Of a stretch of 64,000 bases of DNA, positions 3,390 through 12,300 are shown piece by piece. Every line of letters starts with the position of its first letter. The first letter of the stretch is position 1. The notes beneath the pieces were generated by a model. The model had not been told where the DNA came from and searched no databases. It saw only the letters and a program-made list of their open reading frames with translations. The position numbers and the translations under genes are program-made. Location of the stretch: positions 1 to 64,000 of the forward strand of contig JAHLWZ010000222.1 in assembly GCA_020536535.1 (NCBI GenBank). The letters are read 5' to 3'. Source of the stretch: Pelomyxa schiedti (lineage: Eukaryota > Protista > Evosea).

Positions 3390-3656
3390 TTGTAGGTACC
3401 GGACTGACCAACCCCAACTCCCCTAACCCACTCTCCCGCTTTTCCGCTTTCCAACTACCACACTTTACTGTGACGGGTGCACAACCAGGCCCAAATTTCC
3501 CTTCTTCCTCTTTCACTCTCATGCGTATTTACAACGTTTACTTCTCTCCAAAATGTGGATTTAAAAAAACGTGGCACGATTTTTGGGACTGCCCAAACTT
3601 TTTCGGTGTGCACACGATCAAAAAACGAGCGTTTTTCTGGGAAAACAGTGTGCACA

Positions 3657-3838
3657 CAGTTTGCAGCACGCCAACGGCCAACAGACACACCAATGTGCTT
3701 CCCACCCCAAAAAAATCAGGCACAGCCTGGACCATTTTTTTGTTTTTGTCGATTTGGGTCCGATCGGACTTTCTACACTCTTTCACGCGCGAGATGGTTC
3801 GGTCCTGAATGCTTTGTGATGGTGTTCAGGACCGTGTG
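3657..3838 (+). repeat. Left terminal inverted repeat (182 bp)
   Basis: Reverse complement of 6924-7105. Contains palindrome GTCCGATCGGAC and hairpin CGGTCCTGAA...TTCAGGACCG. Confidence 0.95.
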
Positions 3839-3911
3839 TGTTTGAGTGCATTTTCTTATACTTAGTGTTATGGGCTTGTTTCTGCGAAAAGTGAAAGACA
3901 CCAATCGATTC

Positions 3912-6701
3912 TCAAACACCTGATCTGGGGTGGGATCCCTTTTCTCGGCGGGCTCTGTATCTGGTTTGGTAGGTTGTTTGGGAGGGCAGTGGGCTTGTTT
4001 GAGAGTGTTGTTGTTTCTTCCTTTTTTTCTGTGTGGGTGTTTCTGGCTGCTGATTGTCAGGCTGCAAAGGTGGGGAATATCCCTGAGGGTGGTGAAGGGA
4101 TTGAACTCCTACTTGTGGAGTGGGAAGTTGTTCCATGAGAGATGGAGGTGGTGTTTGGGGAATGGATTGTGGTGGAGTTGGAGGATGAGGAACAGGCAGT
4201 GGTGGAGGAATAGGCTGTTGTGGTGTTTGAGCTGGGGTTGTTGAAAGGGTTTCACCATGGAAATCTAGTGTTTCTTGTGGCACAGGAACATCTGTACTTG
4301 AAGGTGGAGGACGCTGTGCAGATGAATAAATACATTGTAGAGAGAGAGCCTGTGAGGGAACCATGAAGGATTGGGAAGAAACTGAAGAAAACATTGTTGT
4401 TGCTGGATGTGGTAACATGGTGTGATTCTGGTGGATATCAGTCTGCCATGGATCAGGAGGCTGTTGAGACATTGGTTGCAGTCCAAACTCTTGATTAACA
4501 GTGTCTGTTGACACCAGAGCATGAGGTAGATTGACAGAGATCTCCTGTCGTTTCCTTGAATTTGGGTGTGCATGAGCATCATAAAAATGCCATTGCTCAG
4601 TCCACTTCACTTGTTCAGAGAGGGTCAATTTTTCTTTACTAGCTTTCTTTTTAGCAAGTTGGAACTGTTCCAGAGAATACTGAGTTGAACTCTGGTGTAT
4701 AAGATCACACAAGGTAATGATATTACCTTTGGTTGGAGAGAAACTGTCAGAAGCAGCTGCTGTTGGTGAAGAAGAGGCATGTCGAATTGGAAGCATGTTG
4801 TTCAATAGGTTCAACATTTTTCCTTCCAATTGGATATTGCTAGATTGTGGGGCAACCTGGAGGACAGTATCTAACAAGTTGAAGGAACTCTCCACCTTCT
4901 GTGTGGAGATTGGTTGTGTGAAGCAATACTCTTTGCGGAATTTGTCTAGTGCTCCATCTGGGGTGATTTTCACAGCTTTGTTACTGACACATGTCAGCAG
5001 TTCAGCATAGAGCTGAGGCCATCTCACCAAAAATTTGTGTATCTCCTCCACAGGGGTTTGGATGATGCTGGAAAAAGCTGATTTCATCCTCTCTGATTTG
5101 GATAACTTGCCTTCATTGGTGTGAATAAGCAACTTGGCAACAGTATAGCATGAATCATCATCTCCCAATGCAACCATTACCTGTGGAAAACTTGTCCAAG
5201 GATCAAAGTATTCCTTGACAGCAGTGTCATAGGCTTTGAGGAACTTGTTACCCATCCCTTGAGCTTGGGAAGGTGTTTGAGAAGGAAGGTGTGTTGTTTT
5301 GGGAAATTGCTCATGACCACCATGTTTCTCCATATCCACTTGCATGTCTCCAAGCTTCCCTTTCCACTCTTGGATCTGGGAGATGGTTAAAAGAAGGAGT
5401 AAATGTGAAACAACAACTTTCTTTGGAAGCAAATGTGCCTTAAAAGATGCTGGCAAGTTGTGCAATCTGTCAGGTGCTTCTAGCCACTCAGTGAGTTCAA
5501 TGTGAAAGGGAGCAAATTCGTAGAGAAAAGAAAGCTGCATGCGCAGAGTCTGGTTTTTTAACCAAGCAATCATAGTGGCACAAGTATCTCTCAAAGAATG
5601 GCGACTGCTCAGGTAGTGTGAATTGATATGCTCAAAAAAAAGGAGCAACTGTGGAATTCTCTCTTCAACCCAAATAGCAGCTTTGAGAACTGTAAGCCAA
5701 CGTGTGGGTATTGGTCGTGGAATGGTTGTCTTGTCTTTCACTGGTTGGTGTCTCTCCTCACATAAACTGTAAAAATTGGTTGTTGCTTCAGTGCCATTCA
5801 GTCCCTCATTGAAAATCCAGTAAATGTGGTACAGCATTGCAACAGCATTTGCATTTGGGGAGTTACGGGGACAGGCACCTGGTGTGTGTTTCTTTTGAGA
5901 GATGTTAAACCCTTGAGTCATTCCATGAAGCAAGGCCAGATTTGCTCCATGGAGCAGACAGCCAGTTGGTTGACACAAAGTAGTGTCAAGTTTCTCTTTC
6001 ACCAAAGCTATGGTTCCCCCAATTTCTCCTTGCATGCCAGAACAGTTATCTGCAATGAAGGTAGCTGGTGGCACTGCAGAAAGACCCACCTTCTCCAATG
6101 TTTCTACCACTTGGTCAGAGAGTAATTCAGCAGAACAAGAAGTAGTAAATGTGTAACTCAGAAGCTTGTACACAGTGGTTTGTGCTTCAGTGGAATAAAA
6201 AGAAATAAAAATTGGAATGAAGCTTTGATGACGCCTCTTGGATTCATCCATCAAGAGATGATAAGTGGAGACCCCTTGTAACTCTGCAGCAAGGTGTTGT
6301 TGATCCAACTCATTCAAAGCACCAATAATCCTTGGGATGTCAGTGCGAGATGGTAAGGCTTTCACATCCACAGGTTGACCAGTGATGCAACACTGATGTT
6401 ATGGTTAAATGATTGTATAGTTCAGAAAAACATATGCATAAGCAGCAGCAAGAACTTCAGGTAGCTTTTTGGCACTAATGTAAGTGGATAACCAACGAAT
6501 GAACACAGCTTGTGTTACAGGATCTGCTGTAACAGGGCAATAATTGTTCTGTGGTTGCAAATGGAGCTCCTTACGGCAAGCTGCTTCAACAACTTCAGTA
6601 ATAGGCTTTCCTTTTGCTGTTGCCAGCTTTTTTAACTGCTCATAAACAAAATCACAAATGTAAACATGTTTAGAGCTAGCACGTGTTTTTCTAGTTGACA
6701 T
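3912..6701 (-). CDS. hAT-like DDE transposase (spliced) with P/Q-rich C-terminal tail and basic NLS
   Basis: Motifs LLMDES, IADNCSGMQG, GCLLHGANLAL (CxxH), PTRWLT and KVESSFN. Exon 1 (6701-6432) joins through a 39-nt intron (6431-6393), and there is a probable 42-nt in-frame intron near 5376-5417. Confidence 0.8.
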
Positions 6702-6923
6702 TGTCTAAACAACCAAAAAAAAAAAAGACAAATGTTAGTTAAACACCCTACCATAGCATCACACAAAACTGTTTCAAGTTTCTCTCAGACAGAGTCTTGG
6801 CTTCGCGGTACAATGTTTGTCTTAACTCGGGGTTTCCGATTAATCGGGTTTTTTTTAAGGGAAAAAGTTTTGATTATGCTTGGGGGGTCCTTGTCTATTG
6901 TGTGCTCTGCCAAATACAAAAAC

Positions 6924-7105
6924 CACACGGTCCTGAACACCATCACAAAGCATTCAGGACCGAACCATCTCGCGCGTGAAAGAGTGTAGAAAGTCCGATC
7001 GGACCCAAATCGACAAAAACAAAAAAATGGTCCAGGCTGTGCCTGATTTTTTTGGGGTGGGAAGCACATTGGTGTGTCTGTCGGCCGTTGGCGTGGTGCA
7101 AACTG
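6924..7105 (-). repeat. Right terminal inverted repeat (182 bp)
   Basis: Reverse complement of 3657-3838. Confidence 0.95.
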
Positions 7106-7464
7106 TGTGCACACCCCGCGATCGGGGGAATTTTTTTTCCCCTTCATTTGGTGTGCACACAAACGAAAAGGAAAAAAAATTAGGTTTTTGGCTGTTCTCA
7201 GCATCCAGCCCACGCTGAGTCCTGCAAACGGTTGCACCCCGTGGCCGATGGTCTTGTAGAAAACGCCTTTTTTTTCCGTCTCAGTTCCTCGTCTCTGGAC
7301 TGAGAAAACTAATAAACCCGATAAAAAGTGTGCACACTTGGGCAGTCCCAGACATTGGCATCGCGCATAGAAACAGAACGCCCCAACAGACATTTCTCAT
7401 CTGCGGAACAAAAAGAAAAAGAAAAGGGAAAAAGAAAAAGGGAAAAAAAATTAACAGTTAAGAG

Positions 7465-9333: not shown

Positions 9334-12300
9334 TTAATGCTTTGTTCCACGTGCAGTGGTTTTGGACTTTGTTGTTGGTTGGCTGGGATTGTGTGTCTCA
9401 GAATAAGGGTCTGTCTCAACATCACCAGTTTCAATGAGCACGAGCAGATGCTCCGTTGATGAAATCTCCGGGTTGGGGAAGTTGGGAATGGGCCTGAGTA
9501 GGGCCGTGCCAGTGGCATCGTCAATAAAAACCCGCACTATTGCTGTATTCCCTGTCTCTGTGGCCGGTGGTGCTGGAGGTGTGCCATGACGCGGGCTGAT
9601 AGCACACTGTGGGGAGAGGGAGCGGGAGCGGGAGGAATTGGAGCGGGGGCGGGAGGAGTGAGAACCGTATCTGGAACTGGAGCGGGAACGTGAGCATGAA
9701 CGGGAGCGCCTTGAAGGGTGATGAATGGAGTGAGGGGATGAATGGGAGTGACGGTTTTGAGAAGAGTTACGGCTTTTGGAAGTATTTCTTGTCCTGAGTG
9801 TGGTGGTTGGTGGGGGAGCAGCAGCCGGTTTCTTCTTGGTCCAACTGAAAAATCTATCCTGGAGATGCTTGCACACAGCAAGAGTCAAGCGTGTGTGCTT
9901 GTCAATTCGTTTGAGCATATCGCGGATATCACGTGTTTCGACTTTCTTGTTCTTGCACTCAATTGTGATTATCCCACCGTCTATTTTGATGTCGGTGTGT
10001 TCTGCGTTCGGCACGCGTTTCAACGTGCTGAGTTTCAACCCCGCGAGTGCACACAACGCTGTGGGCCATTCACAGTTTGGGGGTGGCATGAACCCAACCC
10101 CTGGGAAGAAGAAATTGACAGCAGCAGCACTTGCGTAATCACCTCCAGCAGAGGCCCCAACACCAGAATGGTCACTGCCAGTTTTTGTTGGTGTTGACGG
10201 TGAAGGAGGAGGGGTGAGGAGCTGACAGAACTGGTGGAGTAGCGGGTGAACTTCAATTTTTGCTGGTGGCTGTGTGGGGTTCCAGGTTCCATCCTTCGTT
10301 TTTGGTTCTCGGAGGAGGTGCCTCAAAAAGAAGCCAAGGAATTCTGTTGAATTCAAGCCTTGCTTTGAGAACCCAATGCTGCGTGATGCGGCACATGCAG
10401 CAACACCAGCCAACTGCTCGAGGTAATTCGCACTTGAGGCTGGTGCCGAGGCATTGCTGATTGCTGTGCACCCACACGTGGGGTGAGTCGCGTCATAAAA
10501 GGCCACTCGGGCTGTGGTTGCATTCCCGAACTTGTTGAAAAATGGTGCAAACTTTTGGGTTCCCAACAGAGACAAGTGGAGCCAAAGTTCTTCATTGGGG
10601 TTTGGAAAGTAACTGCTGGGGTTGAATATCCTCAATTTCCAGAGCAGTTCCCGAAATGTTGACAACTTCAATGTGTGCACACCTTCCTCGAGGTCAAGGT
10701 GTGCGAAATGCATCGCCACAAATTGTTGTTTGGCAGAAGTGGTCTCGTTCCGCTTTTGGCTCACTGCTGTGGGTTTCTTCTTCTCCTCGCTGTTTTGTCT
10801 TCTTCCGGTCTTATTTCTGTCATCATGCTCAGAAGACAAGGGAGCATGCGGGCAATTTTCAGGGCTTTCAGGGAGGAAGTAGCAATCGGCACAGAACAGG
10901 CACACCTGTCCAGCCTTCCCAGGGCTGGTTCCCCGTATGGAGGGCTTGGAATTCAATGCCCACTTGAAAAGGTTGTTGCTCAGAATGTTAAGTAGTTCAG
11001 GTACGTTGTCAACCAGGTTTCGAAGGATGTTGCTGTTTTGTCTGCTGACAGACGAAGAGGTGGTGCTCGTGGCGATACTGCCAGTCGAGCTGCCGCGGCT
11101 GGCATCAACGGAAATGCTGCTCAGTGAATTGGGGTCACATCCACTTTTGTAGGAAGAACCCTTCAAGAGTGCGATTTCGCGGTCCATTTTCAAAATACAT
11201 CGAGAGATTGCAAGTGCAAAACGAGGTCTGGCAGTGTGGATGAGACACTCCAGAAAGGCAGAAACAGCTTTGTCTGAGGAAGAAATGTGATCAAGAACCG
11301 GGGTGACATCGGAAACGACCATGGGACAAATGGATGGTGACTTCTTGTGTACAAGAATGCACCATCGTTGTGGCTTCATGGAGCAAGATGAACCTGAAAT
11401 TTCGAGAGATCCAGCGAAGTTTGCGATGTTCACATCGGTGCCACAGAGGATCGGACACACTCCACACACACGCAGTGCATTCCTGATGAACAAGTGCTCC
11501 TTATCCTTCAAATTGGCCTCGTCAAGGAAAAAGTAGGGGCACTCAACTTTGGAAAGGTTTAGTGCTATCTTTCTGACATCGTCTGCCAAACACTTGTTTG
11601 AGAGTGTGACTGAAAAGGGTTCCTGGAATGCGCACCAAGGCCAGTCCATATCTCTGTGACTCAGCACCCACTTGACCCATGCGTGGGTCCATAGACTCTT
11701 TGACAATGATGCAGTGCTTATCCCCAACTTTGAACCACTGCAGATGCTCAACTGTTCGATTTCCTCCATGTCCTTCTTCACACATTTGAAGAGGGATTGG
11801 GTGAAAGATAAGAAAGGATAGAATATGAACTGCGATTCAGCCTTGTCCACCTTATCTTCGAATACTAAGGGAATGTATCTTTTCTGTTGTTACTAGAGAA
11901 GAGGGGGAAGGAAAAAGCACACATAGTTTTGCGTGGCAGGCCAAAAGCAAGTTGAGTTTTACCAACTCCCGAAGAGCCACAAACCAACACAAAAGGGCGG
12001 TGTTGAGTTTTGGTGGCACAATCCCGGCACTGTTGAAACGCTTCTTTCAGTGCCTTCAAGCTCGGATCGTTTCCTTTGAGTTGCTGGCCAATTTTTCTGT
12101 ACTGTTCCACAGCTTTTAGGTTTTCCTCTGCCAAAAACAAACAAAAAAAAAAGGTGAGGAAATTCAGAGGCAGGGAAAATCGTACCTGGTTCTTGGCTGC
12201 ATTGAACTTCATGATTGATTCCTGGATTAGAGTGAGAAAATTGGTGAGAAATAGTTGGATATGGCAACCTGCTTGTCTCGCAGCCTGCATCGCTTTCAAC

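Follow-up and report, generated by a model that had tools for sequence, protein, structure and literature searches.

A divergent hAT-type transposase with a probable ribbon-helix-helix head in the amoeba Pelomyxa schiedti

Can a hAT transposase carry a ribbon-helix-helix (RHH) unit in the place where a BED zinc finger is expected? This question is raised by a gene on the minus strand of contig JAHLWZ010000222.1 (assembly GCA_020536535.1) of Pelomyxa schiedti, an anaerobic amoeba belonging to the archamoebae. Some eukaryotic transposase heads contain helix-turn-helix units, and RHH domains are regarded as prokaryotic and viral. The window, i.e. the complete stretch of 64,000 nucleotides analyzed here (positions 1 to 64,000 of the contig), holds the gene within a transposon of 3767 bp (3584-7350, gene on the minus strand), and an initial annotation, made from the letters of the DNA, had described its product as a hAT-type transposase headed by an RHH domain. 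A review of eukaryotic transposases names the zinc-chelating BED, WRKY-GCM1 and THAP domains as their heads (PMC1702500). The reading that is considered likely is that of a divergent hAT lineage with an RHH head: computation shows how the gene is built, that its core has the predicted fold of a hAT, and that the head is conserved, resembles RHH proteins and can be modelled as a dimer, whereas binding of DNA by the head, the sites bound and the activity of the element are putative. Searches of the literature retrieved neither a eukaryotic transposase headed by an RHH domain nor a description of this architecture, and the family lies outside Pfam, in agreement with the annotation's suggestion that the lineage may be undescribed. 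Judged by computation, a hAT lineage in which an RHH unit replaces the BED finger would be an architecture not described before. All genome-wide counts refer to the Pelomyxa schiedti assembly of 52 Mb in 5337 contigs, a SPAdes single-cell assembly with RNA scaffolding (PMC8887013).

The catalytic part of the enzyme is encoded by exon 2 (3912-6392, minus strand), whose 826 codons comprise a predicted hAT-fold core (codons 1 to about 530) and a tail rich in proline and glutamine (P/Q-rich) with a basic end. Residues 1-620 of this exon were modelled with AlphaFold2 (AF2), using the relatives of the protein as the alignment. The model has a predicted local distance difference test score (pLDDT) of 74.8 and a predicted template modelling score (pTM) of 0.73, and presents an RNase H-like sheet (strands 44-83, 111-114 and 141-144) followed by about 20 helices. 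In a Foldseek search with this model, ranks 1-12 were all occupied by the Hermes transposase (E 8e-8 to 9e-6, 552-589 alignment columns, TM score by target 0.50-0.57), and the next match was the P element (E 1.8e-4, TM 0.25). At the sequence level, hhalign aligned the family profile with a DUF4371 (Buster-type) protein at a probability of 97.2% (E 4.5e-11), with both Asp motifs and the C..H motif in register. Additional leads for the core from the Atlas language-model neighbours were PF27073, PF14291 and PF05699.

The putative catalytic residues agree with this assignment. The first Asp (exon-2 codon 49, motif MDES; 6246-6248, minus strand) is Asp in 10/10 alignment rows that cover the column, lies at the end of a predicted strand and aligns with the DET of a Buster-type hAT. 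The second (codon 115, ADNCSG; 6048-6050, minus strand) precedes the C..H motif and is placed by the alignment and by hhalign, while codon 501 (QKVESSFN; 4890-4892, minus strand) encodes a Glu in every alignment row at its column and, going by the hAT motif, would be the third catalytic residue. Conserved in the 16-row family alignment are D49, D115, C141..H144, TRW at 229-231 and E501, as well as a QP.ST..VE..FN motif of the same type as that of the hAT dimerization domain; the Hermes fold match reaches the C-terminal helices. Owing to the AF2 and Foldseek results, the hhalign alignment and the conserved D, D, C..H, TRW and E, the fold and catalytic motifs of a hAT enzyme are taken to be present, and exon 2 is, on the modelled structure, a hAT-type transposase core, Hermes-like in predicted fold and with Buster-type sequence kinship.

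Several results weigh against this assignment. Exon 2 matches no Pfam family, hAT included, and PF05699 was not found at E 1; phmmer comparison of the exons with the sequences of the Protein Data Bank (PDB) returned no match, and neither did a word-index protein search with exon 2 at E 1e-3. A profile built from paralogue fragments was discarded, as MAFFT had stretched the fragments, 314 positions were left and its PDB matches were noise; a cleaner family profile again matched no PDB sequence. The termini of hAT elements usually start with YARNG, and those of the present element are instead perfect 13-nt repeats that begin with TGGGAC (TGGGACTGCCCAA) and are usually preceded by T. Among the hallmarks of hATs, the BED finger, the Pfam dimerization domain, YARNG termini and an 8-bp target duplication were thus not found. 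An enzyme from another RNase H-fold superfamily (P element, Kolobok or an unnamed one) that merely resembles hATs would account for the missing Pfam hAT match, the family profile that stays blank on PDB sequences, the untypical termini, the long inverted repeats and a probable 5-bp duplication, and the P element does appear in the fold search. However, it appears there behind twelve Hermes entries that align over 552-589 columns, with its E of 1.8e-4 and TM of 0.25, the hhalign probability of 97% ties the family to a hAT-type protein, and hAT is acknowledged to include groups whose duplications measure 5, 6 or 7 bp (PMC12730594). A non-hAT origin of the core is therefore scarcely probable.

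The relatives that inform both the core and the head were collected by an exhaustive HMMER search, in which 24 proteins among 1.84 billion representatives reached E <=1e-3, the closest foreign homologue being P0002 (E 8e-34). Pfam recognized DUF4371 in 2/20 relatives scanned, above the cut-off in P0024, a beetle 'ZNF862-like' protein (E 3e-10), and weakly in P0012 (0.0047). In the Pelomyxa genome, at least three more lineages of the element are present, at 25-60% protein identity.

What heads this core? Exon 1 (6432-6701, minus strand, 90 codons) is conserved in four lineages of the genome. It belongs to a minus-strand open reading frame (ORF), 6701-6405, that opens with MSTRKTRASS, and the 32-residue stretch on which the initial annotation had based its proposal is present as residues 11-42 of this frame. 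The predicted RHH unit covers residues 9-47 (6561-6677, minus strand), with a strand at about 11-16, helix A at 17-30 and helix B at 36-46, the helices being placed by an AF2 monomer model of exon 1. The annotated pattern of a strand, an amphipathic helix, a G turn and a second helix recurs in eight heads, namely those of the four lineages in the genome (the window's own, the L019 type, L027 on C485, and L044/L032 on C233/C18) and those of the foreign proteins P0002, P0003, P0004 and P0008. In all of them helix B is capped by Ser/Thr, and identity to the window's head ranges from 15 to 43% overall and from 17 to 43% among the in-genome lineages. When a profile of four heads was compared with the PDB, RHH proteins made up three of five sub-threshold matches (AvtR, SvtR and ParG, E 0.5-1.1). 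Once the more distant heads joined the profile, the ParG match strengthened from E 1.1 to 0.0019: with all eight heads, ParG (1p94) ranked first (domain E 0.0037) and was aligned in register to its folded RHH domain, followed among RHH proteins by SvtR (E 0.26) and AvtR (E 0.97). The Atlas language-model neighbours listed for residues 5-52 (0.89-0.91) are RHH_5, RHH_1, NikA-like, RepB-RCR_reg, Arc, RHH_3 and HicB, together with one further cluster without a common family.

The most specific prediction of an RHH fold is an intertwined dimer, and here the structural check proposed in the initial annotation came out in its favour. A predicted homodimer of residues 5-52 reached an ipSAE of 0.39, compared with 0.02 for the best control, at a pLDDT of 72-75, and at least 90% of contacts were common to the three runs. 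The 0.39 mark is reached by 21/30 proteins solved as pairs and by 0/23 solved as single chains. In the model, ribbon contacts are arranged about the two-fold axis (13:13, 14:13 and 15:13), helix B packs on helix B' (38:38, 41:41 and 42:42) and helix A contacts helix B' (19/22/23/26 against 42/45/46), with an interface formed by residues 9-17, 19-26 and 34-48. The contact map is that of an RHH-type dimer. A zinc finger is not indicated: as annotated, no BED finger is present, Pfam zinc-finger families being absent from both exons, and the sister lineages do not retain the Cys and His residues of exon 1, nor do the heads share any conserved Cys/His pattern.

An alternative view of these data takes the head for a helical, amphipathic N-terminus of a generic kind or for a degenerate helix-turn-helix, with DNA recognition located elsewhere, e.g. 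in the conserved helices that follow. Several observations count in favour of this view and against an RHH unit. The Pfam RHH models remain below threshold on all heads, the best values on different heads being 0.071 for RHH_1, 0.11 for RHH_3 and 0.096 for PSK_trans_fac; exon 1 itself retrieves only PF07704 (E 0.1), and the RHH_1 model found no match in the whole genome at E 10, at which the controls were detected. The AF2 monomer of exon 1 has a pLDDT of 56.6 and no strand, and its Foldseek search returned nothing at E <=0.001. The best conserved part of exon 1 is its second half and not the putative RHH unit. In addition, all lines of RHH evidence may key on one and the same sequence pattern, and the dimer may pass its controls because the model remembers RHH-like patterns. 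However, the strandless monomer is expected, since RHH strands fold only in the dimer; the gain of the ParG match upon addition of more distant heads, the listed Atlas neighbours, which are almost all RHH families, and a dimer model that passes its controls with RHH-type contacts all argue for the specific fold. A generic helical head is therefore rated as rather unlikely, and residues 9 to about 47 are assigned with good confidence to an RHH unit, a predicted fold on which four lines of analysis (conservation, profile, language model and dimer model) agree. The top rows of the monomer Foldseek search were taken by DndE (E 0.6), a protein described as a tandem RHH (PMC10853773); these rows were rejected as evidence.

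Downstream of the RHH unit, residues 58-90 (6432-6530, minus strand) form two helices (IRWLSTYISAKKLPEVLA) that represent the best conserved half of exon 1 and include the invariant Ser76. The IRWLSTYISAKKLPEVLA motif is common to P0002, P0003, P0004 and P0008, where it leads directly into the catalytic core. Ordinary hATs have a helical domain behind the BED finger, to which this segment could correspond; in that case, the RHH unit would sit exactly in the BED position.

Do head and core form a single protein? They are separated by intron 1 (6393-6431, minus strand), a GT-AG intron of 39 nt with in-frame stops, and the splice proposed in the initial annotation is sound at the level of the reading frame, as removal of 6431-6393 links codon 90, which ends at 6432, in frame to position 6392. 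The position of this intron matches that of a 46-nt intron in a sister lineage (GTATGA...TTTCAG), and the sister-lineage copy requires splicing because its intron changes the frame. No intron separates head from core in L027, P0003, P0004 and P0008, where a single ORF runs through both. The GenBank model KAH3765254.1 (770 residues) likewise removes intron 1 and makes the same join between exons 1 and 2; a near-identical fragment of the gene corresponds to KAH3705933.1, and both entries are labelled 'hypothetical protein'. Since the GenBank models were made with Augustus, PASA and EVM, together with transcript data (PMC8887013), they count as predictions.

The transcript data point in the opposite direction. 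Within the one RNA run that holds the locus, no spliced contig crosses intron 1, and the sole contig over the junction (6276-6483, depth 3.9) retains it. At the gene, RNA contigs span only 6276-6647, which takes in part of exon 1, the whole of intron 1 and 117 nt at the start of exon 2. In this single-cell run, the remaining 2.3 kb of that exon are devoid of contigs, and a further 50 nt (7251-7300) are also covered. With intron 1 retained, the frame closes after eight extra codons and yields a head-only protein of 98 residues. These observations would suit a scenario in which exon 1 is expressed mainly or only alone, as a 98-residue RHH regulator (ORF 6701-6405), while the transposase starts downstream. 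Yet exon 2 has no ATG near its start, where the ORF listing opens at a GTG (6371), in every homologue the conserved helices run on from exon 1 into exon 2, homologues encode head and core in one ORF, and the sister lineage must splice to keep its frame; moreover, the library may hold DNA or pre-mRNA, and the depth of the contig is 3.9. Expression of exon 1 mainly or only alone is very unlikely on this balance. Head-only and full-length products could coexist, and the 98-residue protein from intron retention is a possibility rather than a finding. The RNA-seq check across 6393-6431 thus left the annotated splice without a spliced read contig and with one unspliced contig, and the splicing of exon 1 to the transposase core is supported by the conserved position of the intron, the intron-less homologues and the GenBank model.

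A second short intron is probably present at 5376-5417 (minus strand, 42 nt). This stretch has GT-AG ends, is open in frame and is removed in the GenBank model; its 14 encoded residues (VVVSHLLLLLTISQ) are missing in 15/15 homologues and have an AF2 pLDDT below 50, indicating disorder. Near the 3' end of the gene (3912-4400, minus strand), KAH3765254.1 leaves the long frame close to HPATTM via a third predicted intron and terminates 27 residues later in another frame, while the uninterrupted ORF runs on through the P/Q-rich tail and closes with the basic sequence KKRKK. As the tail of the divergent copy L027 is likewise rich in P/Q and Lys, the long reading of exon 2 may be the correct one.

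If the transposase has an RHH head, which DNA could it read? The element is delimited by two perfect copies of the terminal inverted repeat TGGGACTGCCCAA, one at its 3' end (3584-3596, plus strand) and one at its 5' end (7338-7350, minus strand). Similarity between copies stops at 3583/3584 and at 7350-7359, read contigs branch at 3583, and the flanks outside the termini are unrelated, differing in sequence among 70 distinct ends. The length of 3767 bp follows from this comparison of copies and from the TGGGACTGCCCAA termini, which place the ends at 3584 and 7350. The genome holds at least 79 exact copies of TGGGACTGCCCAA; when one mismatch is tolerated, 82+86 matches are counted, compared to 12+19 for the reversed control. 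A 196-nt inverted repeat, consisting of a left arm (3648-3843) and a right arm (6919-7114) that are 98% complementary, lies inside these termini; it is subterminal and hence not the boundary of the element. Several full or nearly full copies are 92-100% identical, with 98-100% for the copies that serve as evidence for the element, and deletion derivatives are numerous (e.g. 645 bp at C159:9325-9969). The element is a young, multicopy DNA transposon of Pelomyxa schiedti and probably an intact and recently active member of the divergent hAT lineage.

The candidate sites of the head are short palindromes in these ends. The 10-bp palindrome GTGTGCACAC is found six times in the window, with 0.14 expected, and five of these sites lie in the ends of the element (3606-3615, 3648-3657, 7105-7114, 7151-7160 and 7328-7337); the sixth, at 10673-10682, is located outside. 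Genome-wide, GTGTGCACAC is enriched five-fold, with 253 sites vs 50 for the reversed control. At the 5' end of the element, one site directly adjoins the terminal 13-mer; at the 3' end, the spacing is 9 bp. A second palindrome, GTCCGATCGGAC, is present once in each arm of the inverted repeat (3758-3769 and 6993-7004; none expected), its two copies being a consequence of the repeat itself. Both palindromes that the initial annotation had put forward as targets therefore exist, and the GTGTGCACAC sites in the ends are candidate targets of the RHH unit. A point against such a target is that the sister lineage has no obvious palindromic repeats in its ends.

From these elements, a mode of action can be proposed. 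The RHH unit would occupy the place of the BED finger, and the conserved helical region would lead from it into the hAT core. Two transposase molecules would pair via their RHH strands into a two-stranded ribbon, which would read short palindromes, most likely the 10-bp GTGTGCACAC sites beside and inside the termini. Binding of GTGTGCACAC would in turn recruit the hAT core to both ends of the element, and cutting and joining would proceed as in other hATs, probably with a 5-bp staggered cut of the target.

The stagger is deduced from the flanks of the 70 distinct ends, in which A is found at position -5 in 61/70 and T at position -1 in 60/70, with no bias beyond -5. A partner with the reverse-complement 5-mer exists for 41/70 ends, compared to 29.8 expected, a number reached in 12/1000 shuffles. 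The sequence ANNNT in front of the termini forms a palindromic target consensus. The target duplication is thus probably 5 bp (ANNNT) and not 8 bp. Two results stand against a regular hAT duplication: an 8-mer partner was found for 0/70 ends, which speaks against an 8-bp duplication, and in the three cases in which a single contig holds both ends of a copy (C222, C159 and C476) the flanks are unequal at every length tried, possibly because the single-cell assembly mis-paired their ends. As the length of the duplication varies within hAT (PMC12730594), the lack of an 8-bp duplication does not exclude hAT membership.

Further observations concern the variation among ends and relatives. Outside the 196-nt repeat, the two ends of the element differ, with 64 nt at the 3' end (3584-3647) and 236 nt at the 5' end (7115-7350), and both the short 3' type and the long 5' type recur many times in the genome. 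In the copy G000:C1440:3739-4170, a 5'-type end adjoins the 3' end of the gene, and for this reason the short end may be a deletion variant. A derivative of the sister lineage, L031, is present in three copies with identical matches (G000:C262:11588-13600, C402 and C1334) and is internally deleted and frame-shifted; its termini, GATTTGG(A/G)ACGGCCAATG, are related to the TGGGACTGCCCAA of the window. Among the foreign homologues, P0002 carries a long N-terminus rich in Ser, Pro and Ala ahead of its head and a Cys/His-rich C-terminal extension of about 290 residues (residues ~900-1186, NSCWCDAALVALC...) that Pfam does not recognize and that may be a captured peptidase-like domain. P0004 is encoded on a metagenome contig of the Joint Genome Institute (L081, 1-1012), on which no inverted repeats were found around the gene. 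About 4 kb away lies the pol gene of a retrotransposon with long terminal repeats (RT_RNaseH, Integrase_H2C2, rve), which marks this contig as eukaryotic and repeat-rich.

A bolder scenario can be drawn from the combination of these features, although it is unlikely. A separate and as yet unnamed hAT lineage, distributed in Archamoebae and several uncultured eukaryotes, might have swapped its BED finger for an RHH unit of prokaryote or virus type and be characterized by termini with TGGGAC, inverted repeats of great length and a 5-bp target duplication of the form ANNNT. In such a lineage, the dimeric ribbon on its palindromes would combine end recognition and subunit pairing in one act, and the 98-residue RHH protein from the intron-retained transcript would compete for the same sites and repress the element, in a way similar to truncated P-element proteins.

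If the RHH assignment is true, a hAT core is able to function with a DNA-binding module of a very different kind that is dimeric by necessity, and the head would be among very few RHH domains of eukaryotes. Its origin would then become a question of capture from a bacterium, plasmid or virus versus independent evolution. A head of 40 residues and a palindrome of 10 bp would also represent a compact system to address how hAT transpososomes find and pair their ends. In addition, the 24 relatives indicate that annotation based on Pfam overlooks an entire hAT lineage.

Compared with known systems, the transposase most closely follows Hermes and other hATs (PDB 2BW3, 4D1Q and 8SJD) in its overall plan, with a predicted RNase H-like D, D, E core into which a large helical domain is inserted, C..H and (T)RW motifs, and a cut-and-paste element that has inverted repeats at its termini and subterminal repeats as well. 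It differs from them in the RHH-like unit instead of a BED finger, the missing Pfam hAT match, an identity to Hermes of 8-11%, the 196-nt subterminal inverted repeat, the TGGGAC termini and the probable 5-bp duplication. The nearest recognizable sequence relatives are the Buster-type hATs and their domesticated kin (DUF4371; ZNF862-like, P0024; phmmer E 1e-3): the hhalign match extends over the catalytic domain's first half, where DE(S/T), DN..M.G..GG and C..H are aligned. In contrast to the strand-helix-helix head found here, these proteins begin with a zinc finger (by eye in P0024), and the similarity lies below every Pfam model. With the hAT5 group, which was compared by description and is placed within an animal hAT lineage, the element shares a probable duplication of 5 bp rather than 8 bp (Kapitonov and Jurka 2007, as cited in PMC12730594). 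As for the head, the sequence likeness to known RHH proteins is marginal, with no Pfam threshold reached, while the arrangement of a strand, helix A, a tight turn and helix B within about 40 residues and the predicted strand-paired homodimer are shared with ParG, CopG, Arc, MetJ and SvtR/AvtR. Those RHH proteins belong to bacteria, archaea, plasmids and viruses. Whereas known RHH proteins are small and free-standing or prokaryotic, the unit described here would form the N-terminus of a eukaryotic transposase of about 900 residues whose gene contains spliceosomal introns.

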